Sequence record: OR513085.1
Length of the DNA stretch: 64,000 nt
Direction: 5' to 3' (one strand)
The translations under genes were made by a program, and so were the position numbers. A model generated the notes under the pieces. It saw only the letters and a list, made by a program, of their open reading frames with translations, had not been told where the DNA came from and ran no database searches. Shown piece by piece: positions 29,486-56,265 of the stretch (the first letter of the stretch is position 1; every line of letters starts with the position of its first letter).

Positions 29486-30622
29486 ATGAAAAACATTTTA
29501 ATTGCTAAACCTAGCAACGACATTTACATTAAAAATCGTGACGACCGTAGCAAAACAGATTTACAGTCATCAGAGATTTTAGCATTCATAAAAGCTATAA
29601 ACTACACAGCATTAGTAACACAGCCAGGCTTTAGATCAGATGCTAAAATTTACTTAGTCAATTCATTTACTACCTGCATGACTAACAATATTGCATTAGC
29701 TACAGATTCGTCATTGAAGTCTAAGCTACACAATGTTAGTCAGCAATCTTGGGAAGGCCAGGCTGCCATTGACGAAGTTAAGTCAAATTTTACAAGCAAG
29801 GATGTTTTCTTTATTTTCTGCGGATTATGGGACCTTGCTAAAATTCAAAACATACAAATAATTGAATTTGCTAAACATTTTCCAGGGAAAGTTTATTATG
29901 TTCAAAATGACTTGCGTTTAGATATGCCGGATGACTTAAAGCCTTACGTTGACAAAATCCTTACACAGGCTACTAAAAACAATGAAGCTAATGGCAGAGA
30001 ATATATGGCGTTAGACTTCTTGCCAGTTTTCTACATTGAGCAACAAATGCAAGTTCCTCACGAATATGATATTGCTGTACCATTTATGAACTGGACTGAC
30101 ATGGGCGAATATAGAAGGCGTAACATACTTTCATTGATTCGTGGCTATGCTAGAGAGGACATAAAACGACTTATTATAGGGCCTAAGGAACAAATTGTTG
30201 AATTGCATATACAAGGTTCGTTTATATTTCAAAAAGGCTGTACATTTTTACCGACAGTAAAACATAATGAACTTGTAAAGACTATGCGAAAGTCTAAAGC
30301 ATCTTACATTATTTCCGAACAGATTTACATCAAAAATGGCCTAACACCTAACAGGGTTATGGAAGCTTTGCTTTCAGGAGTAGTTCCTATAGTAGAATCT
30401 AACACACTAGATTCGTTCAATCCTGACATTATTTCAATGTTTGGAGGTTATTTTTACTATGACCATACTTGTCTAAGTGGTAGCATAGACTTCAATGAAG
30501 TAATTGATGGGCGATCATTATACGAGCAACAGCAACTTACTGCAAGACTGCATACTGATTGCGAAGTTCGTTGGAAAGTGCTTAAATACATAACTGATAA
30601 CTTTGCAAAATTTGTAATATAA
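29486..30622 (+). CDS. DNA beta-glucosyltransferase-like glycosyltransferase (GT-B), paralogue 1
   Basis: VYYVQNDLRL (T4 BGT YYLFTDIRL, catalytic Asp), KILTQA (KVISQG), NRVMEALLSG (LRVWETMASD). Confidence 0.7.
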   Translation: MKNILIAKPSNDIYIKNRDDRSKTDLQSSEILAFIKAINYTALVTQPGFRSDAKIYLVNSFTTCMTNNIALATDSSLKSKLHNVSQQSWEGQAAIDEVKSNFTSKDVFFIFCGLWDLAKIQNIQIIEFAKHFPGKVYYVQNDLRLDMPDDLKPYVDKILTQATKNNEANGREYMALDFLPVFYIEQQMQVPHEYDIAVPFMNWTDMGEYRRRNILSLIRGYAREDIKRLIIGPKEQIVELHIQGSFIFQKGCTFLPTVKHNELVKTMRKSKASYIISEQIYIKNGLTPNRVMEALLSGVVPIVESNTLDSFNPDIISMFGGYFYYDHTCLSGSIDFNEVIDGRSLYEQQQLTARLHTDCEVRWKVLKYITDNFAKFVI

Positions 30623-30629
30623 TAGCTAT

Positions 30630-31367
30630 ATGTCAATTAACAAACAAAATTCGTTGCGTTACGATAAAAACGCATTAGGAAAACAGCCGGCAATAGACCG
30701 GCTTTCCTTTCAATTCGGTAAAATACTGACCTCCACACTACTAATCATTTTAGTAATGGTTACGTTTTTGATAGGAATTTCTGTACACTTGGCTGATGTT
30801 TTCGGCTCTTGGTATCTTGCAGTAGGTATGCAGGCAGTTATCTTAATTGCATCTACAAACTCTGACATCTTACCAACTGTAAAAATTGGTAAAGGTACAT
30901 TGACAGTAATACCATTTGTAATGTCTTTCTTTATGGCTTGGTACATTTTCATATCCTTTGACGGCCTAAAAGTTGAGCCTTGGGGAGTTGACTTTTACAC
31001 GGCATTATCAAAGTCAATTGGTATTGCTGCAACCGAATATATGTTTTCTTACCTTTTTACATTTAGGTTCAATAAATTTATGAATGACTTAAATGGCTTA
31101 AAGAAGTCTGAGGCTGATGCTAAAATTTCAGACCTTGCTGATGAACAAGAATTTAAACGTCAGATGGCTAAGTTTGCCGAGGAGTCTAAGCCTACAAGCA
31201 TAATAAACGCTAATGTGCGTCAGACTCCTATTAGCATAGCTTCGGAATTAGTATCAGAACATCCTATGGAAGCGCCTAATTCACTGCCAAAAATTGTAGT
31301 ACCTGAAGCTAAACCTGTTAAACCTCAGCAAATTAGACCTACTGGACAAACTAACAAAATGCTATAA
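30630..31367 (+). CDS. multi-pass membrane protein with P-rich cytoplasmic tail
   Basis: about 4 hydrophobic segments. Confidence 0.7.
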   Translation: MSINKQNSLRYDKNALGKQPAIDRLSFQFGKILTSTLLIILVMVTFLIGISVHLADVFGSWYLAVGMQAVILIASTNSDILPTVKIGKGTLTVIPFVMSFFMAWYIFISFDGLKVEPWGVDFYTALSKSIGIAATEYMFSYLFTFRFNKFMNDLNGLKKSEADAKISDLADEQEFKRQMAKFAEESKPTSIINANVRQTPISIASELVSEHPMEAPNSLPKIVVPEAKPVKPQQIRPTGQTNKML

Positions 31368-31370
31368 AAC

Positions 31371-31544
31371 ATGAAAATACCTACAAATCCGCTACGTAGA
31401 ATTATTTCTGCAGGCACTAAAGTTACAATTGACGATAATGGCTGCTATGATGTAGTCAGACAATCTAACAATTTTGAATATACTTGGGTCACTGATGGCA
31501 AGTCTACCTGGGAAGTTAGAACTTTACGAATAGCCTTAATTTAG
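31371..31544 (+). CDS. 57-aa hypothetical protein (not in ORF track)
   Basis: MKIPTNPLRRII...LRIALI fills the gap exactly. Confidence 0.5.
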   Translation: MKIPTNPLRRIISAGTKVTIDDNGCYDVVRQSNNFEYTWVTDGKSTWEVRTLRIALI

Positions 31545-31586
31545 TATAATACACACATGCAATTCAATAATACACAAGACAAAATC

Positions 31587-32888
31587 ATGGCAAAGCAAAA
31601 AAACAAAATTTTCATACTTAAAATAGGTTCGTTTATGAGGCCGGAGGGCGATACATCGTCGATAGGTCTGATAACCAAGGAACCTAGTAACTTCGCAAAG
31701 GTTTTAGTTGACACTGTAGGCGATGACTTTGAAATTGTACTAGGCTCAGACAAACATATTGTTGATGTTGACAATAGCCTAACATACATAAACATTGAAC
31801 GTGACGGTAGGTTTTTTGCCAATGACATGAAGCCAGGTGATATCCTGCTAATTTGGCAAGGAGTTTACTTGGACCAAGAACATCATCCGCATATTACTGC
31901 ACACTACGAGTTTATCAACGAACTACAAAAACGTTCAGATGCAGGAACTATCAAGCAATACTTTATGATGACCGACACTAGAGTTCCTTTGCTTAATATA
32001 GTTGACTATGTTAAGTCTAAATTTACTCCTGGCGAATTTGCTTCAAAGTATATGGATGAACATGCTATTGACTTTTTATGCGATACGTCTAGGTTTGACA
32101 TTGATACTGAACAAATTGTTATGCTTACTCAAGCTTACAAAACTGCATTTTTACAAAAGGACTTGGCTGACGGTTTAGTTGAATGTAATAGCTACTACCA
32201 AGGTTTTGAATACAAAAAATACAAAACAATTTGTCACTTACCTATGCATTGCATGCCGCTTATAACGCATACTGTAGATAATTCATTTCCGTACTTCAAT
32301 TCTACAAACATGCCTAAGCATGACATGGTATTCACAGTACAATCGCTAGGATATTTCAACGACTACAGAATGGAACGTTTCCTTGAACTTGTAGCACATC
32401 CTAGCATTTCAACAAATTTTGATGTTGCAGTTTATGGAAAACATAACCGCAAGGCATACAACAAATTGTTTGACTATGTAGAAGCTAATGATACTACTGG
32501 CCATGGAGTTGTTAGTTTACCAAAAATGCTAGGCCCAGTTAAGTTTGACTATATGAAGTACATTCTTAACCAGGCGCAATATAATATGTGCATTTCAGAA
32601 GGTCCTTACGTTAAGTACGATTTATTGCCAAACAGGATTTTTGAATCATTCGCATCCGGTACTTTACCTTTGGTCGATATAGACATTGTACAAACTACTT
32701 CACAAGTTTCATTCAGATGGCTAATGTCAGCAAACAATAAATTCCTAGTCGGTAATACTGATGATGTTGTAGAAGCTTTACGTGGTCATAGCCAAGGCGA
32801 AGTTAACGGGTTTAAAAACGATATCCAAGCATTTATGCAATCTGCACTTACAAACTTTTACGCAGAAATTAAAGACTATTTTTCATAG
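31587..32888 (+). CDS. DNA beta-glucosyltransferase-like glycosyltransferase (GT-B), paralogue 2
   Basis: QYFMMTDTRVP, VMLTQA, NDYRMER, NRIFESFASGTLPLVD; start 31587 or 31557. Confidence 0.75.
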   Translation: MAKQKNKIFILKIGSFMRPEGDTSSIGLITKEPSNFAKVLVDTVGDDFEIVLGSDKHIVDVDNSLTYINIERDGRFFANDMKPGDILLIWQGVYLDQEHHPHITAHYEFINELQKRSDAGTIKQYFMMTDTRVPLLNIVDYVKSKFTPGEFASKYMDEHAIDFLCDTSRFDIDTEQIVMLTQAYKTAFLQKDLADGLVECNSYYQGFEYKKYKTICHLPMHCMPLITHTVDNSFPYFNSTNMPKHDMVFTVQSLGYFNDYRMERFLELVAHPSISTNFDVAVYGKHNRKAYNKLFDYVEANDTTGHGVVSLPKMLGPVKFDYMKYILNQAQYNMCISEGPYVKYDLLPNRIFESFASGTLPLVDIDIVQTTSQVSFRWLMSANNKFLVGNTDDVVEALRGHSQGEVNGFKNDIQAFMQSALTNFYAEIKDYFS

Positions 32889-32890
32889 CA

Positions 32891-32926
32891 ATTTTGGCAA
32901 AAACTTTTAAAAGTTTTTGCCAAAAT
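32891..32926. repeat. perfect 36-bp palindrome abutting an early promoter
   Basis: ATTTTGGCAAAAACTTTT/AAAAGTTTTTGCCAAAAT. Confidence 0.9.
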
Positions 32927-32959
32927 GTTTTCTAGTGTCGTTTATTTTTCTTAAATTTA
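32924..32959 (+). promoter_or_regulatory. phage early-type promoter
   Basis: GTGTC-N12-TAAATTTA. Confidence 0.7.
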
Positions 32960-32984
32960 CATAAGAATTTAAAATACATACAAC

Positions 32985-33359: not shown

Positions 33360-33416
33360 TGAAACATCAAATTGCTTCGCATAATAGCATATAAACAAAT
33401 ACACAACAAAATACAC

Positions 33417-34124: not shown

Positions 34125-34145
34125 CCACAAAATAAAACAAACAAA

Positions 34146-37422: not shown

Positions 37423-40400
37423 ATGAGTATCAAAATTTATCACTCAGCAGATGTCCAAGTGAACTGTGCTGGGAAACACTCGAATCGGTACAACGAACAT
37501 GTTTACATGCTAACCCAACAATCTAGCACAGTTATTAACGAAGGTTATGACTTGGCAGTTTTTGTTGGCGACATGTTTGAAAGGGCAAATACTACCGACA
37601 CCGAGAAATCACTTTTAGTCAACCATCTAATAAAGCCAATTTTGGATGCAGGCATTCCAATTTTCTGGACTGATGGTAACCATGACTTAAAACAATCAAA
37701 ATTTTCGTTTGACCCAGGTGATGGTTCAAAGAAAGATGAGGTTGGCGTACTTAGAGCGTTGACCGACTTTATTGATTCTCCGCTACTTACATATGGCGAG
37801 GAAACTGGCTTCTACAACATGGGAGAGTTTAAAGGTCAAAATGTCATTATTGCTTGTTGGTCGCATAAAGCTAAATATTCAACCGAAGCCAAATTCAAAT
37901 CGCCTTGGCTAGAATTGGATGCTAAACCTGCAGAAAAGCAAGAATCTATCCGAGCAGCCTTGGCTAATTCAATTGTTTTTGATACTTACCACGACCCGGT
38001 ACGTAACGTTAAGAACTTTGATGGCAAAGTTGTACGAGGAGATAACGAAGCACGAACTGATATTTCCGAGTTCCTTGGAGACTTCTGTTTGATGGGGGAT
38101 ATTCATATGCCAAGCATTATGAGAACTCCAAACAGAGCTGCAGACTTCTTTGCGTCTTACCCATCATCACCAATGATTTTATATTTCGGTGAAGGCGACT
38201 ACTACACAAACTTTACGTTAGTCGATGAACGTAACCCACATCACGGATTCAATCATGTGGTAGTGCATTCCAAAACTTCAAAGGAAGTTACGTTTGTACC
38301 TTACAATCAACATACAACTAGGCATACTATAACAATTACTGAGGACTTTGATGTCGATGCAATTCCTGATTTTGAATTAAAGAATGCTTCTGCTATCAAC
38401 AACATGGTACGTTTAGTAATGACTACGTTTGAAGGAATTGAACAAGTCGACAAACTAATCAAACACTTACAAAACAAATACACAGTAAGTATTGATATTC
38501 AGACAAAAGTCAATCAAACGCTTACTCAAAACAGTCTAGATGAAAGCTTCAATATTTCCGACCTTTCAGACAAGGACTACTTAATGAAAATTGCAACTCA
38601 GTGTATTACTGACAAAGTCAATGCTACAAGGGATTCCGATGAATACAAGCTACGACTAATCGAGGACACTGTGAAAGTTTTTGAATCTGCGCTTGACAAT
38701 ACACAATACGTAGTACCTCTAAGCAAATACAAATTCCAAACGTTAGACTTGCATAATTTCATGCCAATCAATGAACTTAAATTGGATTTTGACCAAATTC
38801 GTAACTTAGGTTCAATTGTGAAAATCAACGGTAACAATGGTACTGGAAAAACTACAATTTACAAAGGGTTACTTTGGATTGCTACTGGCAAAATTGACTG
38901 GAGACAATCTGAAAATAAAAGCAAACGAAATGCTCTGGACTATTTCAATGACAAAGCATGGGACAAAGATACTACTGCAGGACGTTTAGTTGTTACGCTT
39001 AACGACGAACGTATTGAAGTTTCAAGGTCAATCACTAGACTTTGGGCAGCTAAGACATCTGACACTCATAAAAAATCTGTTAACTGGAAGCACCATGTTT
39101 GGAGAGTTGATGAAAACCTGGAAGTTAAAGTTAATGGTGAAGTACTTGCAGAAAAGGATGCTGACGAAAAGTTACTAGAAGTTTTTGGTGACTTCTACAA
39201 ATTCCAAAGCATGCACGTAGTTAACCAGGCACACTTAGATCACTTGTTGCTAAACTTACCACTCGACAAGTTAATCGACTATATTCTAAAAAGCATTGGA
39301 TTTACTGTAGCCGAGCAACTTAAAGCTAACTTAGAGCCTGAACGTTCTAGGCTATTTAAGGACTTAGTTAAGCATGGTAAGGATATTGCAGGAATCAACA
39401 TTGACATTGGAATTAAGGAAACTGAAATAGTACAGACTGAGGAAAACATTGCTGATGTAGAAAAGCAAATTGACCAGGCTACTGACGAAATTTCAAAAGT
39501 CGGAACTATGCTTAACCAACTTAATGCTAAGCTGCATGTAGTTTCTGACGAAGATAAAGCTAACGTTAGCAAAAAGGAACAAATAGTTGAGCAAATGTCA
39601 GGCTTACAGCTGGCAATCAAGGAGACTCAATACAAAATTGACAATCCTGTTTGGTCAGAGGAAAAGCAACAAGGCTTAGCTGCTTTGAAAGCTGAGCAAG
39701 TTAAGCTTAATGGAGACTTACTTACAGGAACTTCCAGAATTTCAGAGTTGCAATCTACTAACGTTATACTTAACAACACAGTATTTACTGCATCTGGCGA
39801 AATTACGAATATCAATGTAGCACATGCTAATGAAAAGGCTCAGGCTAAGTCAGACTTACAAAAAGCTAAGGCCGATAATTTAGCGACGATTGCAAATTCT
39901 ATAAATCAAATTTTAGATGCAGTTAATGCAGAAGCTAAAGAGCGTAATGCCGAAGTTGGTGAAAAGCTTGATGAACTTAACGAAGCTATACGTGCAACCA
40001 AGGAAAGCAAATCACAATATGAATCTGCTGTAGCTAAGTTAGAAGGGCAAATTGAATCTGAACAAAAACAAATTGACAAACTAAATTCTGGTCAATGTCA
40101 AATTTGTGATAAGTCATATGCCGAACTGCCTACAGTTAAAGCAGAGATAGCTAAGCACCAGGCTACTATTGATACTGCAAATGCTAACATTACTACAATT
40201 AAAGGGCATATTGAAAAGTTTGAAGCTACTATAGCAGCTAACGAACAATCTATAGTTACTACAGAAGCTTTACGTAAAGAAGTAGTTACGCAACTTACGC
40301 AACTTACGCAAGAGCAATTAACTGCTAACATTACTCAGCTTACAGAAATTAAACGTTTGACTGACGAAAATAAGGATGAGTACATACAAACAAAATCCGA

Positions 40401-41403
40401 TGCTATTGATAAACTTGAACTTTCAGAAGGCCAGTTAGCCAGAGTTAACGAATTGAAGCTAACAATTGCAGATGCTGAAGCTAAAGTCAAAGCTAACAAT
40501 GATGCTGTCGAAACGTTACGACTTTCTATAGCAGAGCTTCCTAAAAAGCTAGAAAACGTTCAGCTTGAAATTGCTAATGACGAAGCATTCCGTGAAGCCA
40601 ATACATCAGAAGCACTTTACAAATTGCTGCTAACTCAAAAAGGTTCAGTAGAATCTGGCGAAAAGTTGTTAGAACGAATTGTAGTTGCTGAGAAAAACCT
40701 ACAAGACAATGAGGTAGTAGAGGCTGAAATTAAGCTACAGGAATCGAAGACTGACGAATACAAGAAGGCTTTAAATTTGGCAAATAGCGAAGCGGCTAAA
40801 CTACGTATACGTTTAACTACGTTGAAAACTCAGAAAGCCGGGCTTGAGTCAGTTATTGACGAAATCAAGGACTATGAGCATGCTAACAATATTTGGTCAA
40901 TGTTTATTCACACAATCGGAATCAAAGGATTGAACAAATACGTCTTCGATACTATTGCATTGCAAATTAATGCTGAGTTAAATTCGTTACTTGATGGTCT
41001 TAACTACAGGATTTTCTTTGACTTAGGTGATGGCTATGCATTGAAAATGGTTGACTTACTTGGTAACGCATCTATACGTAACCTATACACAATAGGCGGT
41101 ATGGAATCGACGCTAGGCTCATTGGCATTGCTAACAGTCATAAAGTCCAAGACAATCAAAAATAACGGAGACTTTATGTTCCTTGATGAAATTACCGGAA
41201 AGCTTAACAATTCCAAGGACACTAAAGGAACTGATGCTACAAACAAAGACTACCACTTTGAGTTCTACACAATTTTGAAAAAGCTATCGCAGAATATCAA
41301 CATTTGCATAGTTGACCATGCATTACCAATTGAATGGTTTGCCTCAGTTATCGACATTGTTAAGTACGACAACGGAGTATCTGACATTGTACAGTCAGTT
41401 TAA
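37423..41403 (+). CDS. fused Mre11/SbcD (gp47-like) nuclease and Rad50/SbcC (gp46-like) ATPase
   Basis: phosphoesterase motifs SADVQ, GDMFE, GNHD, GDIH; Walker A GNNGTGKT; long coiled coil with CQIC zinc hook; signature-like IGGME; Walker B FLDE. Confidence 0.9.
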   Translation: MSIKIYHSADVQVNCAGKHSNRYNEHVYMLTQQSSTVINEGYDLAVFVGDMFERANTTDTEKSLLVNHLIKPILDAGIPIFWTDGNHDLKQSKFSFDPGDGSKKDEVGVLRALTDFIDSPLLTYGEETGFYNMGEFKGQNVIIACWSHKAKYSTEAKFKSPWLELDAKPAEKQESIRAALANSIVFDTYHDPVRNVKNFDGKVVRGDNEARTDISEFLGDFCLMGDIHMPSIMRTPNRAADFFASYPSSPMILYFGEGDYYTNFTLVDERNPHHGFNHVVVHSKTSKEVTFVPYNQHTTRHTITITEDFDVDAIPDFELKNASAINNMVRLVMTTFEGIEQVDKLIKHLQNKYTVSIDIQTKVNQTLTQNSLDESFNISDLSDKDYLMKIATQCITDKVNATRDSDEYKLRLIEDTVKVFESALDNTQYVVPLSKYKFQTLDLHNFMPINELKLDFDQIRNLGSIVKINGNNGTGKTTIYKGLLWIATGKIDWRQSENKSKRNALDYFNDKAWDKDTTAGRLVVTLNDERIEVSRSITRLWAAKTSDTHKKSVNWKHHVWRVDENLEVKVNGEVLAEKDADEKLLEVFGDFYKFQSMHVVNQAHLDHLLLNLPLDKLIDYILKSIGFTVAEQLKANLEPERSRLFKDLVKHGKDIAGINIDIGIKETEIVQTEENIADVEKQIDQATDEISKVGTMLNQLNAKLHVVSDEDKANVSKKEQIVEQMSGLQLAIKETQYKIDNPVWSEEKQQGLAALKAEQVKLNGDLLTGTSRISELQSTNVILNNTVFTASGEITNINVAHANEKAQAKSDLQKAKADNLATIANSINQILDAVNAEAKERNAEVGEKLDELNEAIRATKESKSQYESAVAKLEGQIESEQKQIDKLNSGQCQICDKSYAELPTVKAEIAKHQATIDTANANITTIKGHIEKFEATIAANEQSIVTTEALRKEVVTQLTQLTQEQLTANITQLTEIKRLTDENKDEYIQTKSDAIDKLELSEGQLARVNELKLTIADAEAKVKANNDAVETLRLSIAELPKKLENVQLEIANDEAFREANTSEALYKLLLTQKGSVESGEKLLERIVVAEKNLQDNEVVEAEIKLQESKTDEYKKALNLANSEAAKLRIRLTTLKTQKAGLESVIDEIKDYEHANNIWSMFIHTIGIKGLNKYVFDTIALQINAELNSLLDGLNYRIFFDLGDGYALKMVDLLGNASIRNLYTIGGMESTLGSLALLTVIKSKTIKNNGDFMFLDEITGKLNNSKDTKGTDATNKDYHFEFYTILKKLSQNINICIVDHALPIEWFASVIDIVKYDNGVSDIVQSV

Positions 41404-44256: not shown

Positions 44257-45237
44257 ATGTCAATTTTCCAGCCTAGAAAACACTATAAACCATTTGAATA
44301 TCCGCAAGTACTACAATTCACAGAAGCCATGCAAAAAGGCTTCTGGGTACATTCTGAAGTAGATTTTACTGCGGATGTTCAAGACTTCCATTCACAACTT
44401 GAACCATTTGAACAAAATGCAGTTAAGAATGCTTTACTTGCAATCGCACAAATCGAAGTTTCAGTTAAAACATTTTGGGGTAACCTTTACAACTTATTTC
44501 CTAAGCCTGAACTTAACGGTTTAGGCGCTACTTTTGCCGAATGTGAATTTCGTCATTCGGAAGCATACTCTAGGCTACTTGAAGTTCTTGGCTTCAACGA
44601 CGAATTTGAAAAAGTTCTTCAAGTACCTGCAATTGCTAAACGTATTGCACAGCTTAACTTGGCTAGAACTGACTATCCTAACTTAACAGAGGAACAGGCA
44701 AAAACAGTTAACTTACTTATGTTTGCTGTGCTTGTTGAGAATGTTTCGTTATTTTCACAATTCGCTACGGTACTATATAAGTCCCGATTCTACGGTGTCA
44801 TGAAAAATGTCGCAAATATAATAAATTGGACCTCAATTGATGAGGGATTGCATGGACAGGCCGGGCTAATGCTAATCAATATAATAAAGGAAGAGCACCC
44901 GGAAATTTTTACTGATGACCTTAAAGCCGAGATCGTTAACAAAATTCGCGAGTCTATCGACATAGAAGCCGAAATTAATGCTTGGATTTTTGAGCAGGGC
45001 GACTTTGAAAAATGTACACAGGCCGACTTGTTAGCTTACATGAAGCAAAGAGTTAACGATAGTATGGAAGTTATTGGCTTTGACAAACCATTCTCAGCAG
45101 ATGAAATAGTTTTGGCTAAAAATTTAAAATTCTTTGAGGAGGAGGTGTATGCTAATTCTTTGGATGACTTTTTTGCCCGCAGACCGGTTGACTATTCTAA
45201 GCATGACAAATCAATTACTGCCAATGACTTATTCTAA
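44257..45237 (+). CDS. nrdB: ribonucleotide reductase class I beta subunit (Flavobacterium-type, class Id-like)
   Basis: AQIEVSVKTFW, ECEFRHSEAY, VENVSLFSQF, IDEGLH, DFFARRPVDY. Confidence 0.95.
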   Translation: MSIFQPRKHYKPFEYPQVLQFTEAMQKGFWVHSEVDFTADVQDFHSQLEPFEQNAVKNALLAIAQIEVSVKTFWGNLYNLFPKPELNGLGATFAECEFRHSEAYSRLLEVLGFNDEFEKVLQVPAIAKRIAQLNLARTDYPNLTEEQAKTVNLLMFAVLVENVSLFSQFATVLYKSRFYGVMKNVANIINWTSIDEGLHGQAGLMLINIIKEEHPEIFTDDLKAEIVNKIRESIDIEAEINAWIFEQGDFEKCTQADLLAYMKQRVNDSMEVIGFDKPFSADEIVLAKNLKFFEEEVYANSLDDFFARRPVDYSKHDKSITANDLF

Positions 45238-46325
45238 CATAGGCATACAAATAAACTTATCCGAGTTGCACAAAAACCCGGATAAGTTTTTTGACATTAT
45301 AGATCATAATTGCTATACAATTTACAAAGTTACCAATTTAGTTAACAACAAGTCGTATATAGGCGATACTAAAATAAGTTTACGTGTACGAATATTTGAT
45401 CACATACATGGCAGTTTTGCTAAAGTTCCATTGCATTTATATAATGCAATTAATAAGCATGGCCTTGAAAATTTTGCAGTAGAGGTAGTGTCATATAACG
45501 AACATGATACCGAAAAATTCTACATTGACAAATATGACACATGGTATAATGGATATAATGCAACAAAAGATGGTAAATTTTATCAACGGCATGCATATGA
45601 CAAAACTATATCAGTTTTTAGCAAACAATTAGATATTTATCGTCGAATTAAACCTTTTGAACTTGACACGTATTTGTCTAATGGATGGGTAAAACGAAAC
45701 GTTCATTCAGATTATAAGTGCATATACAATGAAAGTTTAGACATTTATACAAAGGTGCATAAAAATGAACTTGACACGTATTTGTCTAATGGATGGATAT
45801 TGCAAGGTTTAAATACTGGCACAGTATATATGACTACTAATGATGGCAAGCGTACTAAAATAAAGCCTGAATTAGTACAAGACAAATTATTACAAGGGTA
45901 TACTATTGGCTGGGGACCTAATGACCCAGACAGCCGTAAATACATACCGGTGCATAACGCTGAACATACAGTAAAAGTTTCAAAAAAACGAACTGCAGAA
46001 ATTTTTAGACAATGGTTTTATGCGAGGACTGCATCCAAATGACAGAAAAACTAAAGACAGAGGGCTATATACGTATGTGCATAATTATGTTTCGCAAAAG
46101 CGTATATTACGATCTGAACTTGACACGTATTTGTCTAATGGATATGTTAGTGCTAAGTTAGCTCAATCTAAAATTAAAGTTAGAGTAATTAATTGCATAA
46201 ACAAATGCAAAGAACTTAACTTAGAAATTAACGAAGAAAATTTTAACAGTGTACGTAATCAAGGCGATATACGTTTCATAGAGTATACTAAAACAAAAGA
46301 GGCATTCCCCTCATTTTTCAACTAA
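45224..46325 (+). mobile_element. free-standing GIY-YIG homing endonuclease split by a +1 frameshift at A7 (45982-45988)
   Basis: TIYKVTN..YIG motif; ELDTYLSNG repeats continue in the +1 frame ORF 46020-46325. Confidence 0.8.
45658..46143 (+). repeat. three exact 29-bp direct repeats TGAACTTGACACGTATTTGTCTAATGGAT
   Basis: at 45658, 45766 and 46115; encode ELDTYLSNG. Confidence 0.9.
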
Positions 46326-47200: not shown

Positions 47201-48424
47201 ATGTACAAATTCATATACGTCTGGTATAACAAAGCCAGATTTTTTGACAAAACTAAAGACTTACCTTGGATTTATATCGGCATGCACAGAGGGCATATTG
47301 ACGATGGTTATATATCGTCTTCAATTTACTTAAATACTGAAATGCAACAAGATACTGGCAATAATTGGCAGCGTATAATTATTAAGCGTTACGAAGATTC
47401 CGTAAGCGTAGAAGAAGTTTATGCACATGAATGCGCATTGATACGTGCAGCATTTAAACGATATGGCTTTAGCAAAGTACTTAATAGAACTGCAACATTT
47501 AATAAGCCAACATCAAAGGGAAAAGTAAGACTTATAGTACCTGATTCTAATGGTGCTATGATTTGGGTGCCTAAGGCAAATAAAGAAGCATACTTGGAAC
47601 TTGGATATGCTACATTAGCAGGTAAATATAAAACTATTGGTAAGCTTAAAATAACTAACGGCGAAGAAAATAAATTAGTAACAAAAGAAGCTTTTGCTGA
47701 AATGGACCAAAGCATTTGGCGCATTGGTCAGACTAACCGAGTTGAATTTGGAAAAGCTATAAACAAAGATGGTCAAGTAAGATATGCAAAAAGTCATGAA
47801 CTAGATTCATTTTTAGCAGAAGGCTGGACATTAGGAATAGGTAAACGACCAAAATCTCCTAAAGCTGGCGACTCTATGCGCGGTAAAGTTGCTATAAATA
47901 AAGATGGACGTAATAAGTATGTAATGCCTGAAGAACTTGACACTTTTTTAGCAGATGGTTATATTAGAGGTACTGTAAAATGCCCTACTGAAAATCTAAT
48001 TTGCGTGAACAAAGATGGTAAAAACAAATTTATAATGCATGAAGAGGTCGATGCGTTTTTAGCAGATGGCTGGACATTAGGTAACACTAAACGAGGTAAG
48101 CGTAGACTTATGAATAATGGCGAGCATGCTAAACATGTACCAAATGAAGAGGTCGATGCGTTTTTAGCAGATGGTTGGGTATACGGCAAAATAATAAATG
48201 CTGATGCAGAACGCAAAGTATGCATCAACAAAGACGGCAGTACTAAATTCGTATCGCCATCCGTAATTGAAGCATTCTTAGCAGATGGTTGGAAGTATGG
48301 CAGCCCTAACAAAGGCTCACGAAAACTTATGACTAAAGATGGTGAGCGTAACAGGTATATAAATGAATCTGACATAGAAGCATTCTTAGCAGATGGCTGG
48401 ACATTAGGCAATAAAAAAGTATAA
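47201..48424 (+). mobile_element. free-standing Seg-like GIY-YIG endonuclease with about 6 C-terminal repeats
   Basis: FIYVW...IYIGMH.G..DDGY.SSS; repeated NKDG..K.V...E.DAFLADGW..G. Confidence 0.8.
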
Positions 48425-48468: not shown

Positions 48469-50190
48469 ATGCAAGAACGAAATGCACCTTCGTGGATAAA
48501 CGAAGAATCACTGGCTATGCTTAACAGAGGTTATTTATTGCCAGGAGAAACTGTAAACGATGCAATTGACAGAATATGTAAAGCTGCGGCGTCTTATTTT
48601 GTAGGGACTAAATACGAAGCAGATGCTTATAGTAAATTCCGCAGAAACATTGAAAATAACTGGATATCATTCAGTTCACCAGTTTGGTCCAACATGGGAA
48701 CTAATCGAGGCTTACCTATATCTTGTTTCAATACACATATTCCAGATGAAATGTTTGGCATAGCAAATAAACATACAGAGAATGTTATGATGTCTAAGCT
48801 AGGAGGAGGTACTTCATCATACTGGGGCGAGCTAAGAGCCAGAGGTACTAACATTACAGATAACGGAAAAGCTGGCGGCCCAGTACCATTCATGAAAATG
48901 TTCGACACTATGATGACTGTAATTTCCCAAGGAGGTGTTAGAAGGGGAAGCCATGCAGCTTACTTAGATATCGACCATGCAGATATTGAAGAGTTCTTGC
49001 AAATTAAAGAAATCGGCAACGATATACAAAACCTATTCACTGGTGTTAACGTTCCGGACTACTGGATGAATGACATGATTAATGGAGATACTAAAAAGCG
49101 TGAAATCTGGGCTAAAGTGTTAGAGTCAAGAAAAACTAAAGGATTGCCTTACATTTTCTTTACTGACAACGTTAACAAAAATAAACCGCAAATTTACAAA
49201 GATCGTAAGGCAGATATTAAGTCTTCAAATTTATGCGCCGAAATAATGTTGCCATCTACGTTGACTGAATCATTCGTCTGCTGTCTTTCATCAATCAACT
49301 TAATTAAGTGGGATGAAATTAAAGATACTGATGCTATATTCTGGGCCATATTGTTCCTAGATGCAGTTATGCAAGAATTTATTAACAAAACTAAGGATAT
49401 GCCAGGTATGGCCGAATCCAGAGCATTTGCAGAAAGACATAGAGCCATCGGCTTAGGAGTTCTAGGCTATCATGCATACTTGCAGTCTAAAATGGTAGCA
49501 TTTGATTCTTTTGAGGCTACTAGAATCAACAACAGTATATTTAAACAATTGGGCAAGCAAACTAAAGAAGCTTCCGAAGAAATTGGAAAAGAACTTGGAT
49601 TTGCTCCAATATTCCTAGAAGGCGAAACTACTGATATTCCTAGAAGGCACACTACGACCATGGCGTTGCCCCCTACGACATCATCTTCAAGTATAAGTCA
49701 AATTTTCTATAAAAACGAAGATGGTTCAACAGAGGCCTTTGGTAATTCCCCTGGGATAGAGCCGTATTCATCAAATTATTACAAAGCCGGTCTTGCAAAA
49801 GGCAATTTTATGAGAACTAACGGATTCTTAAAACGATTGCTGGTAGAAAAAGGCCTGGACAATGAAGACATTTGGAGAGGCATAATGCTTAACCATGGCT
49901 CAGTTCAGCACATAAACGAACTATCCGATCATGAGAAAAATGTTTTCAAAACGTTCAAAGAAATTTCGCCGTCAGCTATTATAACACAAGCAGCTCAGCG
50001 ACAAGTTTACGTAGATCAAGGTCAATCTTTGAACTTGCTAATTCCTACAGAAATGAGCGTCAAAGACGTCAATCGTCTATACATCGAAGCCTGGGAAAAA
50101 GGCGTTAAAACATTGTACTACCAAAGATCATCGTCAGTTTCCAAGGAAATGATGACTGGCTTTGTAACTTGCAATAGCTGTGAAGCTTGA
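48469..50190 (+). CDS. nrdA: ribonucleotide reductase class I alpha subunit, no ATP cone
   Basis: FSSPVW, PISCF, GGGT, SNLCAE, CCLSS, PPTTSSS, KTLYYQR, C-terminal CNSC. Confidence 0.95.
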   Translation: MQERNAPSWINEESLAMLNRGYLLPGETVNDAIDRICKAAASYFVGTKYEADAYSKFRRNIENNWISFSSPVWSNMGTNRGLPISCFNTHIPDEMFGIANKHTENVMMSKLGGGTSSYWGELRARGTNITDNGKAGGPVPFMKMFDTMMTVISQGGVRRGSHAAYLDIDHADIEEFLQIKEIGNDIQNLFTGVNVPDYWMNDMINGDTKKREIWAKVLESRKTKGLPYIFFTDNVNKNKPQIYKDRKADIKSSNLCAEIMLPSTLTESFVCCLSSINLIKWDEIKDTDAIFWAILFLDAVMQEFINKTKDMPGMAESRAFAERHRAIGLGVLGYHAYLQSKMVAFDSFEATRINNSIFKQLGKQTKEASEEIGKELGFAPIFLEGETTDIPRRHTTTMALPPTTSSSSISQIFYKNEDGSTEAFGNSPGIEPYSSNYYKAGLAKGNFMRTNGFLKRLLVEKGLDNEDIWRGIMLNHGSVQHINELSDHEKNVFKTFKEISPSAIITQAAQRQVYVDQGQSLNLLIPTEMSVKDVNRLYIEAWEKGVKTLYYQRSSSVSKEMMTGFVTCNSCEA

Positions 50191-50547: not shown

Positions 50548-50754
50548 ATGAAAACATTTAGCCAGTTTATCACCGACTGCATGGTCAGTTTCGGCAACTT
50601 CGTTCTGTCAAAAGAACGTGAGGATAATGTTTCCGAAGAAGTCAAACGATCAGTTACGGATGCTGACTTGGCTAATTGGAAAGAAAAGAACAACATAACG
50701 GACAATAACAACTCAATAGAAAATCACGAACCTGGGAATGGCATCAAACTTTAA
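50548..50754 (+). CDS. small hypothetical protein
   Basis: operonic ORF. Confidence 0.55.
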   Translation: MKTFSQFITDCMVSFGNFVLSKEREDNVSEEVKRSVTDADLANWKEKNNITDNNNSIENHEPGNGIKL

Positions 50755-52108
50755 TAACGATCAAAACGGAAATGGAGGGCTTGGCTCTGATGGAATGTAT
50801 CACGATGGACATATGTATGTTTCCGATGAAATGCTAAATTGCGGACCTGTAGGAGGCCAGCTACAAGGCGGTCAATGGAGACACTTCAAAACATTTGACC
50901 CTAACTCAAACGGTTCATTGCCTTGCGGTAACTGTGGCAATTCACACTGTCATCATTGTCATACTTACTTACAAAATGGTAAATGGTCAAATGACTATCA
51001 TGGCTACAATCATCATGGATATTCGCCTGACCAAACTACAAGGTACATGATGAAATATCATGGAGGAAATTATGCACAGCTTAAAAATCTAAACAAAATT
51101 GTCAAAGATCGTAAAGCGACAAAAGTTATTTACATGGATTTTGATGGCATATTCTCCGGAACTATGGCATACAATAAGGACGAGAAATTCATGAAGACTG
51201 CGCAATTTTCTGCACGTTATGCTATTGAAATGCTTAGATTCTACGGATTTGAAGTTAACATTATAACAGGCGACCAATCTGGTTCAGGGTTTGACATTAC
51301 TAACAAAATTTTGGAAAGAATTCCGGTTAATTCTGTACAATACGTATCTGGTCATGACAAATTCATGCATATGTCTGCCAACCACGACATAACTAAAATA
51401 TTCTATGTCGGCGATGATCTTTTCGACTTAGGAATGGCTGCTGGTCGTAGAACTCCTATTCTTATGACTACAGCAAATGCTATGTGGGCTTTGAAAAATA
51501 TGGCACATTACACGGCACTTTCAGGTTCGCATGATTATTCAGTGTTTGACATTGCGTCGGCTATACTTATGTCTTTTGAAATTGACCCTATTGCATATGC
51601 TGCCAAGACTAGAAGAAACAAAATTGCTACAGACCTTGCGGCTAACATAAACTTTAGAATCGGAAATAACATAGCATTCACTGAAAATTCGCAAAACTGG
51701 ACTGCTAATTACTTACCAATTTTAGTTTCTGACTATGGAGTTAATCCTGATCACATAGGACTTACTACTCCTTATGTTAAGCCAGACAACATGAAGTCTG
51801 TAGATGACATTTATATTGCTACTAACTTAGATTATTTTGTAGACAACTATGCATCATTAAGGCATAACAGGACTTATTTCTTACTACCTAGAGAAATTGG
51901 CCTAGGTGATGTTAAGTTTATTGAAACATTAATGGCACTGGACAAACTACTAGCATCGCCACTAATTGAATGGACTATATTAACTGACCACCTTTCTGAA
52001 AATTCCAAGCCTATGCTTTATGCAATTTGTATGGAGAAAAAGCTATACAATGTACTTTCTGCGACAGGCTTTACTGACCCGCAGATATCACCTACTAGCG
52101 GAGGCTAA
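50738..52108 (+). CDS. KdsC/YrbI-type HAD sugar-phosphate phosphatase with His/Cys/Gly-rich N-terminus and extra C-terminal domain
   Basis: DFDGIFS (motif I), IITG, HDK, YVGDDLFD; N-terminal CGNCGNSHCHHCH. Confidence 0.75.
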   Translation: MASNFNNDQNGNGGLGSDGMYHDGHMYVSDEMLNCGPVGGQLQGGQWRHFKTFDPNSNGSLPCGNCGNSHCHHCHTYLQNGKWSNDYHGYNHHGYSPDQTTRYMMKYHGGNYAQLKNLNKIVKDRKATKVIYMDFDGIFSGTMAYNKDEKFMKTAQFSARYAIEMLRFYGFEVNIITGDQSGSGFDITNKILERIPVNSVQYVSGHDKFMHMSANHDITKIFYVGDDLFDLGMAAGRRTPILMTTANAMWALKNMAHYTALSGSHDYSVFDIASAILMSFEIDPIAYAAKTRRNKIATDLAANINFRIGNNIAFTENSQNWTANYLPILVSDYGVNPDHIGLTTPYVKPDNMKSVDDIYIATNLDYFVDNYASLRHNRTYFLLPREIGLGDVKFIETLMALDKLLASPLIEWTILTDHLSENSKPMLYAICMEKKLYNVLSATGFTDPQISPTSGG

Positions 52109-52110
52109 AA

Positions 52111-52150: not shown

Positions 52151-53974
52151 TTATCGTTCAGATGCATAAATCCAAAAATTACGTATCCATTGCTTAACTG
52201 CCAAGGTATACCCAAAGTTGTTTGGATGTAAACCATCACCGGTAGTTATTGACAATGTCTCATCAGTAATTTCAGACTGTCTAAATTGGTCAATGTATCG
52301 CCAACCATTTAGTGCGGCAATGGTCATAATTGCAATTTCGTAGTCTAAAAGTGTATGACCTGCGGTGTTTGTTGATGTTGATGTATAACCGCCATTGTTT
52401 CGCCTAAAGGCATTAGAGCAAAATATAACTGCACCAGGTGTAAGACTTTGAACTTTGTCATTAAACGCTCTTAATGCGCCATAATATGTTAGTATGCCTG
52501 TAGCATTTTTATAATCATCAATTGTACCTATAGGAATATTACGCTTAAAGTCATTAGTAATAGTGTCAATTGACCAAAAGCCATCAGAAGTATCAGTCCA
52601 TGTATTAAAATAGTTTGTTATAGATGCAGTATCGCCAGTAGGTAATGTAGCGCCTAATGATCTTCCTGAGTAACAATATTTGTTGTAACCGTTGAACTTA
52701 AATATTTTTTTAATTAATGTTTGTATACCTACAGCCATAGTGTCAGTACCGCTATACAAAACACCATCCTGGGCCCATATAGAATGACCTACACAATGCC
52801 AAACTTTGTCAATTTTGATCTTTTCAGTAGCTTTGGTAGTAGGCAATAACTTTTCAATTATCTTTGGCCCAGTTAATGTTACTACTGGAGGAGTTGCAGA
52901 ATATCCGCAAGCTCTAATAGCAACTATGTCTGCAGGAACAATTACTTTAATTGGTTCCAATGAATGATCTGAATTGCCAATTAATACTTGTACACTGTTA
53001 TCTGCTTTGTAACCCACCATACCAACTGCTGCAGTAGATTGATTAGTTGCGCCAGTATAGCCTAACGTTAAACCTGCAACATCATGAATAAGTTCAGTAG
53101 TTCTCCAATTGCCGGAATTAATTACTGCGCCATTAGCATCTATGTATGAATTGGCTGGTGTATAATCACCGGTAATGTCAGTTACTATGCTTTCAGTAAG
53201 CGGCGACATTATAACGTTTTTGCCTTCATCTGTAGCTACTATGGCGTATTCAAGCTTATTAAATTCAAGTGAAATGTCTATAAATCCTTGTGCAGTGCCA
53301 AATGCGGTTCCGCTTAAATCATTGACTGTAGTAATGTATGGTGTACCATAACCTGCTGCGGCGGTACGTAATACTGCTGGCGACACTCGCTTATATGCAA
53401 ATGGGTTGTTTGCTAATATTTGCACCCACATGTCGTTAGAATAGTCTATAGCTAGGTCAAAGTTTATCGTAGCTAGTGCTTGGACTGTTGTGCTAGCAGG
53501 AATAACTTGACGCTTCTTTTTAATTAGTCTACCACCTGCTGCTTTGCCTTCAAACAACCTAATTTCAATTTCAGTTACAGGAGTTTCAATTTTTTGGGCA
53601 AAATGAATGTTTACTTTGTCAAAAGGCTCGGCTACAATTCCTAACGATGCAGATATTCCATGAACCGATGTAACTGTAGAATTGCCAATAGTTCCGGTTG
53701 CAGTAACTTGCTTTTCAGAAGTTTCTACTAAAGCATTAGTGAACAAAGTATTTTGTATAAGTACTTTAGTGTCTATGTATTCAGAAGTAGCCTTCATTAC
53801 TGCGCCTTTAGTATCATCTGCAGGATTAAATGAAGTTTCCAAGTTAATGCCTGGCATGTCTTCCTGATTTAAGACTTTTAGCACATCACCTTCAGTCACT
53901 ATAATTTTTGCTTTAACTTTCTCGGTAGCACCGCCTAACTGCGATGGTAACAGCCGCTTAAATTCATTAGCCAT
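52151..53974 (-). CDS. virion-associated protein with C-terminal SGNH/GDSL esterase domain
   Basis: VGHSI (block I), SGRSL, ITND, DGLHPN; beta-rich N-part; TATAAATA upstream on the minus strand. Confidence 0.7.
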   Translation of the reverse strand: MANEFKRLLPSQLGGATEKVKAKIIVTEGDVLKVLNQEDMPGINLETSFNPADDTKGAVMKATSEYIDTKVLIQNTLFTNALVETSEKQVTATGTIGNSTVTSVHGISASLGIVAEPFDKVNIHFAQKIETPVTEIEIRLFEGKAAGGRLIKKKRQVIPASTTVQALATINFDLAIDYSNDMWVQILANNPFAYKRVSPAVLRTAAAGYGTPYITTVNDLSGTAFGTAQGFIDISLEFNKLEYAIVATDEGKNVIMSPLTESIVTDITGDYTPANSYIDANGAVINSGNWRTTELIHDVAGLTLGYTGATNQSTAAVGMVGYKADNSVQVLIGNSDHSLEPIKVIVPADIVAIRACGYSATPPVVTLTGPKIIEKLLPTTKATEKIKIDKVWHCVGHSIWAQDGVLYSGTDTMAVGIQTLIKKIFKFNGYNKYCYSGRSLGATLPTGDTASITNYFNTWTDTSDGFWSIDTITNDFKRNIPIGTIDDYKNATGILTYYGALRAFNDKVQSLTPGAVIFCSNAFRRNNGGYTSTSTNTAGHTLLDYEIAIMTIAALNGWRYIDQFRQSEITDETLSITTGDGLHPNNFGYTLAVKQWIRNFWIYASER

Positions 53975-54003
53975 ATTTATAATTTTTAATAGTATTTGTA
54001 GTT

Positions 54004-54011
54004 TATTTATA
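54004..54011 (-). promoter_or_regulatory. T4-type late promoter motif TATAAATA (minus strand)
   Basis: TATTTATA on plus strand, about 30 nt upstream of the 53974 start. Confidence 0.45.
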
Positions 54012-54051
54012 TTGCACCTAAAATTGCAATAAATATGTATATTAGAATAAT

Positions 54052-54276
54052 ATGCTAACTTATATAACAGACAGGAAGCGCCACTTAATATGTGAGCCGT
54101 ATAGCTTAGAAAACTTGCATCGCATGGCTACGGAATTGAACATAAACATTTGCTGGTTCCATGGTGGCAAATATCCACACTACGATATTCCTAAACGTAG
54201 AATTGCAGATATTGAAGAACGCTGCAAAATAGTTAGGCCTCGTGAATTGTTGCAAATTATCAAAGATAACCAGTAA
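54052..54276 (+). CDS. DUF4031-like small protein
   Basis: LHRMA..L.I...WF......HYDIP pattern. Confidence 0.6.
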   Translation: MLTYITDRKRHLICEPYSLENLHRMATELNINICWFHGGKYPHYDIPKRRIADIEERCKIVRPRELLQIIKDNQ

Positions 54277-54328
54277 CTTTGCCGCATGCTTAGTATCATA
54301 TACACATATAACAAATAAACATAGACAA

Positions 54329-54934
54329 ATGCTAGTACTTTTTGAAGGTCCGGATGGTTCCGGTAAATCCACACTAATTGCCAAAATAAAGCAAAAGTTT
54401 CTGCCGGAAGCTTTAGTATGTAAGCGTAATTCGTTCAAAACATACAATCCGGAGGAATCAAAATACCCAACTAATATCGACTTAACGTTATCCGCACCAT
54501 GGGACTGGAGATTTTTCTTGGAAATGCATGAAGCTAATTTCAAGTCACATAATTTCCTTTGCGACAGATCATTCATTACACAAAGAGTTTACCAGGATGC
54601 TTTAGGCCCTGAAACTAAAACTCCTGAATTGGATGCTACTTTGTTAGCTTACGAACATGAAGTTTCGCAAATTCCTCACCTAGTAGTTTATTGTAAGCGT
54701 AAAACTCTACGTAACGATGGCGACTTTGCTGCAATGGATAACAAAGAACTTGATATTGTTGCAAGGTACGAGGAATACATTGACAATGAATGTACTTTGA
54801 ACAAAATTGTCATTGACACTGAAAAACTTGACATCGACTCTTGTACTGCTTTGATAGTCGGTGCTATCCAGGCAGCTTACAATCACTATGTAGAAAACAA
54901 ATCTGGTAAAGCTATTAACATATGGGCAGATTAA
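54329..54934 (+). CDS. deoxynucleoside monophosphate (thymidylate kinase-like) kinase
   Basis: FEGPDGSGKST P-loop, CDRSFIT..VY; likely start ATG 54329. Confidence 0.85.
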   Translation: MLVLFEGPDGSGKSTLIAKIKQKFLPEALVCKRNSFKTYNPEESKYPTNIDLTLSAPWDWRFFLEMHEANFKSHNFLCDRSFITQRVYQDALGPETKTPELDATLLAYEHEVSQIPHLVVYCKRKTLRNDGDFAAMDNKELDIVARYEEYIDNECTLNKIVIDTEKLDIDSCTALIVGAIQAAYNHYVENKSGKAINIWAD

Positions 54935-56265
54935 ACAAACAGCCTGGGGGTCTTCTTGACTCCCAGTTTTCCGCAATACTTTCACAAAAAACTAACAGAA
55001 CAATAATCGAAGCCAATTCGGTTCATGATGCTTACGTTCTAGGACTTCATGCATTAGCTAACGGTAGCCAGGATATCGAAGTTAAGGAAGGAGTCAAAAC
55101 AAAAAACTTACACAATGCAATAATTGAACTTACTCCTCAGTATTCCGAGGAAAATCCAATGGGCTACTTTAGTAAGCGAGTTTTTTGTAAAAAGCGTAAC
55201 CTGACTAACAAAATTCAAAATGCTGAGTTTGCTTGGTATATGACGCTAAACTCCGAAGTTGACGCTATCACACCTTACATCAAAAATTGGAATAAGTTTT
55301 CTGATGACGGCATTCATGTTAATTCAAACTACGGAGCTATCTGGGCTGAGCAAATGCCAGGAGTCATACAAAAGCTGGTTTTTGATAAGTATACTAGGCA
55401 GGCTTCGTTAGCAATTTATTCAAGAGACATGGCTAACATGCATGACTCCAAGGATATAAATTGTACATTGTCAGTAGACTTCAAAATTTTACCAAGAGCT
55501 ATTGGCGGAGGTGATGAACTTCATATGACTGTAATGATGAGGTCTAACGATATTGTTCACGGTCTACCAATTGACATGTTCTGTTTCGGTACGCTTTTGG
55601 AATTGTTACGTAACGAACTAGCTACGTACTACGAAAACTTATACTTAGGAACTTACACGCATATTGCAACATCATTGCATATCTACGAAAATGCTTACGA
55701 TAAGTTAGAAGGCATTGAACTTATGGAGCCTGAACGTATTCAAAAGAAAAACGAAATCACAGCAATTCCGCCGGCAGTAACTTACATGAACTTCTGGGTA
55801 CATCAACCTGCATATATCATGGGCATCCTGGATAAAAAACATTTTGCCAAGTTCACCAAGAACTATGATATGTTCTTTTCGTTCAATTTCATTAACTCGT
55901 TAGTTGAGGAGCTTTATATCGACAAGCATAAAAACTACACTAACTTGATTAAAATTGAGGACTTAATGCCAGTATTCGATGAAGTTGTAGCATACTGTGA
56001 TGAGTATGACATTACATTACCTGCACAAGAATATGCTAAGGACAAAGTAAAAATGTTTGATTTACTTTATGACTGTGCTAAAATAGCAGGAACACAAATG
56101 ATGTCTACTGCATTTTTGTCAACAGTTATACTGGCTAGGGATGCTGCACATTTTAAACAATCATTCACGCATATAAGCGGTTTTGCATCTAGCAAATTCC
56201 CGATAACTAGATATTGTGCATACCAGGCAGTACTTAATTATGTTCTAAACGCACCGAAAGACTAG
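54922..56265 (+). CDS. dCMP hydroxymethylase/hydroxylase-like enzyme (T4 gp42-like, thymidylate-synthase fold) with C-terminal extension
   Basis: AEFAWY, VNSNYG, DINCT (catalytic Cys), MRSNDIVHGLPID (Asp at the dCMP-specificity position), SLHIY. Confidence 0.85.
   Translation: MGRLNKQPGGLLDSQFSAILSQKTNRTIIEANSVHDAYVLGLHALANGSQDIEVKEGVKTKNLHNAIIELTPQYSEENPMGYFSKRVFCKKRNLTNKIQNAEFAWYMTLNSEVDAITPYIKNWNKFSDDGIHVNSNYGAIWAEQMPGVIQKLVFDKYTRQASLAIYSRDMANMHDSKDINCTLSVDFKILPRAIGGGDELHMTVMMRSNDIVHGLPIDMFCFGTLLELLRNELATYYENLYLGTYTHIATSLHIYENAYDKLEGIELMEPERIQKKNEITAIPPAVTYMNFWVHQPAYIMGILDKKHFAKFTKNYDMFFSFNFINSLVEELYIDKHKNYTNLIKIEDLMPVFDEVVAYCDEYDITLPAQEYAKDKVKMFDLLYDCAKIAGTQMMSTAFLSTVILARDAAHFKQSFTHISGFASSKFPITRYCAYQAVLNYVLNAPKD

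Follow-up and report, generated by a model that had tools for sequence, protein, structure and literature searches.

Two routes to glycosylated cytosine in phage DNA provide the closest described comparisons for the locus reported here. That of T4 consists of the gp42 dCMP hydroxymethylase, the gp1 dNMP kinase, the gp56 dCTPase and alpha- and beta-glucosyltransferases. To our knowledge, the well-studied cases of glycosylated cytosine all come from Straboviridae of Proteobacteria or from Pootjesviridae. A description of arabinosylated 5-hydroxycytosine and of the genes behind it (the Afh system of RB69, DLP3 and HY126) was published in 2025–2026, AfhE of phage HY126 being a bifunctional enzyme that serves as arabinose-5-phosphate kinase as well as UDP-arabinose pyrophosphorylase (PMC13326640), and the DNA of phage PAU, which infects Sphingobacterium, has been reported to be extensively modified (PMC7824862). 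Here we analysed a 64,000-nucleotide stretch (the window; record position = window position + 62000) of OR513085.1, the 218,539 bp genome of Chryseobacterium phage MA9V-2, a jumbo phage and myovirus of C. indologenes. With moderate confidence, we conclude that MA9V-2 encodes a pre- plus post-replicative cytosine hypermodification system that would yield glycosylated 5-hydroxymethylcytosine (5hmC), possibly with arabinose. A preliminary description of the window had already proposed such a system; of the six genes it named, five are upheld, and the genes are indeed dispersed across the window. The sister phage MA9V-1 is about 90% identical across the window and about 85–97% identical for every system component checked there. 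In PMC10537231, the nearest phages to MA9V-1 are PAU and Tenacibaculum phages PTm1 and pT24, with PAU placed in the same jumbo-phage clade.

The genes in the window on which this conclusion draws are as follows (window coordinates throughout).

31557–32888, plus strand: MA9V2_115, a GT-B protein resembling T4 beta-glucosyltransferase (BGT) and predicted to be a DNA glycosyltransferase (443 aa; identified by profile, AlphaFold and Foldseek)
29486–30622, plus strand: MA9V2_112, a second BGT-like glycosyltransferase and paralog of the first (378 aa; identified by profile membership)
54922–56265, plus strand: MA9V2_146, a thymidylate synthase (TS)-fold enzyme predicted to be a dCMP 5-hydroxymethylase (447 aa; identified by PF00303, PHROG 5131 and active-site columns)
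54329–54934, plus strand: MA9V2_145, a TMK-like P-loop nucleotide kinase predicted to act on modified dCMP (identified by PHROG 761)
50738–52108, plus strand: MA9V2_142, a KdsC-type HAD-IIIA phosphatase protein (456 aa; HAD domain at residues ~119–290)
17754–18698, plus strand: MA9V2_094, a canonical thymidylate synthase, ThyA (PF00303, 1.2e-104; 54% identity to E. coli ThyA)

With T4, this gene set shares the signature of a TS-fold dCMP hydroxymethylase (C146, D143, D169, D177), a kinase, a candidate NTP pyrophosphatase, a dCMP deaminase, a separate ThyA and BGT-fold glycosyltransferases with equivalents of Asp100, Arg195, Arg269 and Glu272. It differs from T4 in that sequence identity to T4-like enzymes is only about 13–30%, the hydroxymethylase is extended at its C terminus, the kinase resembles TMK instead of gp1, two BGT-like paralogs occur with no enzyme resembling the alpha-glucosyltransferase, an NDP-arabinose-type pathway absent from T4 is present, and the whole resides in a 218-kb jumbo phage of a Bacteroidota host. 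With RB69, DLP3 and HY126, it shares homologs of AfhE and of the SIS isomerase, adjacent as in HY126, as well as a HAD phosphatase, a MazG-like pyrophosphatase and a TMK-like kinase beside a TS homolog, a pairing likewise described for DLP3, RB69 and RL38J1. In contrast to those phages, the TS homolog lacks D169N, the phosphatase is KdsC-type rather than AfhF-type, the glycosyltransferases are BGT-like rather than GT4/BshA-like, and the genes lie scattered over >120 kb, not in a single cluster. By these comparisons, the MA9V-2 gene set is a hybrid of the T4 and RB69 systems, joining a hydroxymethylase signature and an arabinose-nucleotide pathway to transferases of the BGT rather than the GT4 family. 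The preliminary description had anticipated such a mixture, and the enzyme with the hydroxymethylase signature, the kinase and the BGT-like genes on one side and the AfhE-like and isomerase genes on the other agree with it, except that both RB69-type parts lie outside the window. The combination, which that description did not recognise from a described phage, now has context in the arabinosyl-5-hydroxycytosine gene set (PMC13326640) and the modified DNA of PAU (PMC7824862).

Neither MA9V2_112 nor MA9V2_115 had a match in Pfam or NCBIfam, single-sequence searches of the PDB with each returned nothing, and both match phrog_32512, a family of unknown function (MA9V2_115 at 1.4e-14). The link to T4 surfaced only after an exhaustive HMMER search for representatives, which found 20 relatives of MA9V2_115 (~20 representative clusters among 1.8 billion proteins), and construction of a family profile, to which T4 DNA beta-glucosyltransferase was the unique match in the PDB (2.1e-5). 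D100, R195, R269 and E272 of T4 BGT align with D140, R271, R360 and E363, which are invariant or nearly so in the family. We take Asp100 to be the catalytic residue of T4 BGT, and the Arg and Glu positions to bind the nucleotide sugar; one PDB entry title among the Foldseek matches names a 'BGT-D100A mutant'. For the confident AlphaFold model of MA9V2_115 (pLDDT 87.6, pTM 0.87), the six highest-ranking matches that Foldseek returned from the PDB were all T4 BGT (E 1.7e-12 to 1.5e-10, TM 0.74–0.81), other GT-B enzymes reaching a TM of 0.58 at most. A profile from which all MA9V sequences were left out recovered MA9V2_112 over its full length at 1.3e-30; this protein keeps E42, D140, R142, Q192, R271, Y351, P358-N359-R360 and E363 (MA9V2_115 numbering) and matches MA9V2_115 by BLASTP over the C-terminal motif (5e-7). 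By profile and model comparison, the two proteins are paralogs in a family whose only solved relative is T4 BGT. On these results, the BGT-like label originally given to both genes is right, although the start of MA9V2_115 moves from 31587, an internal Met and the start used in MA9V-1, to 31557. The suggestion of a trisaccharide is without basis because only two glycosyltransferases are supported. Tandem BGT-like pairs also occur in PAU and in two short metagenomic contigs (L013, 442–2941; L014, 1–2030); the contigs encoding the relatives P0004 and P0007, too short to reveal wider gene context, show tandem paralogs. Paired paralogs may be a trait of this family.

Where the sugar would come from is suggested by genes elsewhere in the genome, in which a dCTPase and sugar-nucleotide genes had been thought worth seeking and in which a MazG-like pyrophosphatase, the isomerase MA9V2_233 and the AfhE-like MA9V2_235 were found. 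MA9V2_233 is a SIS arabinose-5-phosphate isomerase (TIGR00393, 3.3e-24; PHROG 5670, 1.5e-36; HY126 isomerase, 7.5e-22). Two genes downstream, MA9V2_235 combines NTP-transferase and APH-kinase domains, matches HY126 AfhE over its full length (phmmer, 5.2e-35) and phrog_4098 at 4.2e-70, and has relatives in 246 phage records at a coverage of at least 80%; the isomerase and AfhE genes are neighbours in HY126 too. The genome also encodes DHFR and two proteins annotated as hypothetical in GenBank: MA9V2_025 (L002:21560-22762, MA9V-2 record), with a C-terminal dCMP/cytidine deaminase domain (5e-15), and MA9V2_030 (L002:24793-26202, MA9V-2 record), with two copies of DUF1599, the 'nucleotide modification associated domain 1' (3e-38).

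Inside the window, the assignment of the gene at 50738 as a KdsC-type phosphatase is borne out by the family profile of MA9V2_142, all of whose matches in the PDB are KdsC/YrbI chains (best 2.3e-9), and by four HAD motifs that are invariant among five relatives (D134/D136, T177, K208, D226/D227). The protein departs from the single-domain KdsC architecture of ~160–190 aa by extra N- and C-terminal regions. Its N-terminal ~118 aa (50738–51090) are of low complexity, rich in Gly, His, Cys and Asn and absent in three of four relatives, and residues ~290–456 form a conserved C-terminal domain without a recognisable family. PAU encodes a homolog, gp216. In the metagenomic phage contigs L015 and L017, the gene for the HAD homolog sits just upstream of those for the kinase and TS-homolog orthologs, and because the three genes are directly contiguous in both contigs we regard HAD-kinase-TS as a conserved module. 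In MA9V-2, the module is interrupted by an SGNH/GDSL hydrolase gene (52151–53974, minus strand) with a tail-fibre-like PHROG match, the sole sizeable minus-strand gene of that stretch, and by a small DUF4031 open reading frame (ORF).

If the phage only glucosylated its DNA as T4 does, with host UDP-glucose as donor and glucosyl- or diglucosyl-5hmC as product, then the isomerase, AfhE-like and KdsC-like genes would instead serve host envelope sugars (KDO/lipopolysaccharide or capsule). Such an arrangement is consistent with the use of UDP-glucose by T4 BGT, the sole characterised relative of the transferases (from PDB entry titles), with the membership of KdsD-like and KdsC-like proteins in KDO-pathway families, and with the distance between the sugar-nucleotide and glycosyltransferase genes. 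We nevertheless consider it unlikely: proteins built like AfhE are known from phages whose DNA is arabinosylated, and most database matches of MA9V2_235 fall in the phage groups named in PMC13326640; the AfhE-like gene neighbours that for the isomerase, an arrangement shared with HY126; three lineages keep the HAD gene in synteny with the genes for the kinase and the TS homolog; and neither KdsA nor KdsB is annotated in the MA9V-2 genome.

The nature of the modified base turns on MA9V2_146. Its TS domain (residues ~17–280) is followed by a C-terminal extension of ~170 aa, and the protein matches Pfam PF00303 at 5.6e-13 and PHROG 5131, a thymidylate synthase family, at 2.4e-34. It was aligned with E. 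coli ThyA, the phage's own ThyA, the TS-type enzyme of HY126 (taken from the gene cluster reached through the AfhE-like match), the T4-like dCMP hydroxymethylase of Aeromonas phage UP87, the SPO1-like and ViI dUMP hydroxymethylases, the Xp12 dCMP methylase and PAU gp182, with residue columns in E. coli ThyA numbering. MA9V2_146 keeps C146, R166, S167 and D169, the last of which we take to be a folate-contacting residue in TS, and is changed at L143D and N177D. The stretch R166–N177 is gap-free in the alignment and shares R166, S167, G173 and P175 with E. coli ThyA, and all 15 inspected active-site columns equal those of the UP87 enzyme, in agreement with the earlier description of a gp42-like TS-fold enzyme at 54922. 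N177D marks a dCMP substrate and L143D/E a non-methyl product, and D169N is diagnostic of flavin-dependent 5-hydroxy-dCMP synthases (PMC13326640). MA9V2_146 carries Asp169 where the HY126 enzyme and PAU gp182, in the same alignments, carry Asn169. A 5-hydroxymethyluracil pathway, prompted by SPO1-type enzymes being the best tblastn matches, was rejected because column 177 is Asp in MA9V2_146 and Asn in the SPO1-like and ViI enzymes.

A two-sequence profile of MA9V2_146 ranked two cytidylate hydroxymethylases as its closest solved relatives in the PDB, the CMP hydroxymethylase MilA (1.1e-16) and T4 dCMP hydroxymethylase (3.9e-8), followed by a 234–238-aa chain named 'Thymidylate synthase' (9iqu/9iqc; 1.7e-6), which is presumably an HY126-type enzyme, with canonical TS at 2e-3 or worse. 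A search of IMG/VR with the TS homolog for related loci found no relatives. The active-site residues point to a cytosine-specific enzyme whose product, given an Asp169 where HY126 and PAU gp182 show Asn, would be 5-hydroxymethyl- rather than 5-hydroxycytosine. Of the two bases left open at the outset, 5-hydroxy(methyl)cytosine, the hydroxymethyl form is the one retained. The kinase described as coupled to this gene overlaps its start by 13 nt at the 3' end and matches PHROG 761 'thymidylate kinase' at 1.2e-18, with a P-loop and DR motif that are invariant in the family alignment; its family profile had no match in the PDB.

PAU is the nearest sequenced phage outside MA9V-1 and MA9V-2 with the same BGT-like family, and carries its modification genes in the cluster gp179–gp187 (NC_019521; L012, 6823–15468). 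The BGT-like paralogs gp179 and gp180 adjoin the TS homolog gp182, followed by RmlB-, RmlC- and RmlA-like dTDP-sugar genes, and through this genomic association the BGT-like family is connected with DNA modification that relies on a TS homolog. Both phages encode two BGT-like paralogs and a TS homolog, together with a TMK and a KdsC-like HAD homolog. PAU differs in that its genes are clustered, its sugar genes are of the dTDP-hexose (Rml) rather than the arabinose type, and gp182, its short TS homolog of 235 aa, carries Glu143, Asn169 and Asp177, the published signature of 5-hydroxy-dCMP synthases. From these residues and neighbours we predict that PAU carries glycosylated, possibly 6-deoxyhexosyl, 5-hydroxycytosine (5hoC).

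If MA9V2_146 followed the RB69/PAU chemistry, it would be a flavin-dependent 5-hydroxy-dCMP synthase, with sugars ether-linked directly to C5. In favour, MA9V-2 encodes homologs of AfhE and of the isomerase from the HY126/RB69 pathway, glycosyl-5-hydroxycytosine is the product in all phages in which use of the Afh arabinose pathway has been demonstrated, PAU combines the same BGT-like family with Asn169, and MA9V2_146 lies at a similar distance from each of the characterised TS branches. The retention of Asp169 in a well-anchored, gap-free stretch where HY126 and PAU have Asn, the complete agreement with a T4-like dCMP hydroxymethylase at the inspected columns and the higher profile scores of solved hydroxymethylases over the putative HY126-type chain make this chemistry quite improbable in MA9V-2. 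It is very improbable that the base goes unglycosylated, as 5hmC or, as in Xp12, 5-methylcytosine, with the BGT-like proteins acting on virion proteins, teichoic acids or lipids: GT-B enzymes take many acceptors, the BGT-like proteins are tied to DNA indirectly, by genomic association, and residue 143 is polar in the Xp12 methylase (Asn) as in hydroxymethylases (Asp), but the structural match to T4 BGT stands far above that to other GT-B enzymes, T4 BGT is the only sequence-level PDB match, and two PAU family members directly flank a TS homolog.

Returning to glycosylated 5hmC as the preferred product, we infer substrates, sugar identity, sugar number and the completeness of cytosine replacement from the folds, families and active-site residues observed. 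Judging from its active site, MA9V2_146 would turn dCMP into 5-hydroxymethyl-dCMP with methylene-tetrahydrofolate, and MA9V2_145, by adjacency and family, would phosphorylate hydroxymethyl-dCMP, leading to its entry into DNA. The MazG-like pyrophosphatase, the DUF1599 protein and the dCMP-deaminase domain are candidates for depletion of canonical dCTP, while ThyA and DHFR would maintain dTMP synthesis. MA9V2_112 and MA9V2_115 would then move a sugar onto the 5-hydroxymethyl group in DNA, acting either in sequence to give a disaccharide or at different sites. By homology to the Afh pathway of HY126 and RB69, the donor would probably be a phage-made NDP-arabinose: the SIS isomerase MA9V2_233 would convert ribulose-5-phosphate to arabinose-5-phosphate, the kinase half of MA9V2_235 would form arabinose-1,5-bisphosphate, the KdsC-type MA9V2_142 would release arabinose-1-phosphate as a non-orthologous stand-in for AfhF, and the nucleotidyltransferase half of MA9V2_235 would complete NDP-arabinose. 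The natural substrate of KdsC presents the same terminal arabinose-5-phosphate phosphate. Host UDP-glucose would be the alternative donor. The expected effect of the modification is shielding from restriction enzymes and CRISPR nucleases.

The ThyA of the phage, MA9V2_094, retains L143, D169 and N177, and is predicted to keep thymine supply apart from the cytosine branch; the separate true ThyA of the preliminary description is present, at a position outside the span in which it had been placed.

Several points weigh against glycosylated 5hmC made with a phage-encoded donor. The choice between hydroxymethyl and hydroxy products depends on a correlational residue rule from a single paper (PMC13326640). 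In neither of two alignments does the L017 ortholog of the TS homolog (L017:11978-13267; 34% identity across the TS domain) display the canonical catalytic residues, the cysteine included, and it may be a divergent or an inactive enzyme. For the kinase, TIGR00041 (2.7e-6) and the Pfam P-loop matches all fall under curated cut-offs, as with NCBIfam, and MA9V2_142 scores 6.5e-7 against NCBIfam KdsC, at 29 bits against an equivalog cut-off of 208. No MA9V-2 homolog was found by phmmer, at E up to 10, for HY126 AfhF or the GT4-like arabinosyltransferase of the cluster, nor was one found for the cluster kinase, and the sugar-nucleotide genes lie ~68 kb from the TS module and ~90 kb from the glycosyltransferase genes. 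The characterised Afh-type cases all pair with 5-hydroxycytosine and GT4-like arabinosyltransferases rather than BGT-like ones, and PAU places the BGT-like family with dTDP-sugar genes, which bears on the question of the donor. Finally, keyword searches of the MA9V papers (PMC13414440, PMC10537231) returned no statement on modification of virion DNA.

A further and more tentative possibility is that the final product is arabinosyl-, diarabinosyl- or mixed pentosyl-hexosyl-5-hydroxymethylcytosine, an adduct undemonstrated in any virus. MA9V2_112 and MA9V2_115 might then represent a new branch of T4 BGT with the donor switched to a phage-made NDP-pentose, and the same glycosyltransferase family might act on 5hmC in MA9V and on 5hoC in PAU. 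Arabinosyl-5-hydroxymethylcytosine is reportedly the structure that was first, and wrongly, assigned to RB69. Glycosylated cytosines decide phage survival against restriction enzymes, type IV enzymes and CRISPR nucleases, and also affect the sequencing, cloning and engineering of phage DNA. The MA9V gene set would extend cytosine glycosylation to a Bacteroidota jumbo-phage clade, would couple an NDP-arabinose pathway with an enzyme of the hydroxymethylase rather than the hydroxylase type, and would define a new, widely diverged branch of T4 beta-glucosyltransferase that could serve as a metagenomic marker of DNA glycosylation. MA9V-1 and MA9V-2 are under development for biocontrol, and an unrecognised DNA hypermodification would therefore be of practical relevance to their characterisation.

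One further gene had been put forward as a divergent third glycosyltransferase.

43206–44243, plus strand: MA9V2_132, an ORF claimed as a third GT-B, membership of the system unsupported

It has no match in Pfam, PHROG or NCBIfam, and its sole homolog found is in MA9V-1. Comparison with the BGT-like profile by hhalign gave a probability of 0.6% and no link, the AlphaFold model is poor (pLDDT 43.6), and Foldseek with that model returned nothing below E 0.2. With homolog search, hhalign, AlphaFold and Foldseek all negative or uninformative, the assignment was rejected. Pfam, when run on 20 other MA9V-2 proteins lacking annotation, revealed no additional glycosyltransferase but did bring out the dCMP-deaminase domain and the DUF1599 protein.

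Across the window, GC content is uniform (0.34–0.38), and neither tRNAs nor Rfam families were detected. Two free-standing GIY-YIG endonuclease genes (45134–46042 and 47201–48424, plus strand) are placed between the genes for ribonucleotide reductase beta (44257–45237) and alpha (48469–50190), and Rfam detected no group I intron. Upstream of the region that runs from ribonucleotide reductase through HAD and kinase to TS lies a gene for a 1326-aa SbcC-like protein (37423–41403, plus strand), whose relatives carry Metallophos plus AAA_23 domains, and this order is kept in L015 and L017. Near the start of the window, a gene annotated in GenBank as CYTH-domain triphosphatase-like (2147–2731, plus strand) belongs to a type suggested, in a survey of jumbo phages, to be able to help deplete canonical NTPs (PMC7824862).

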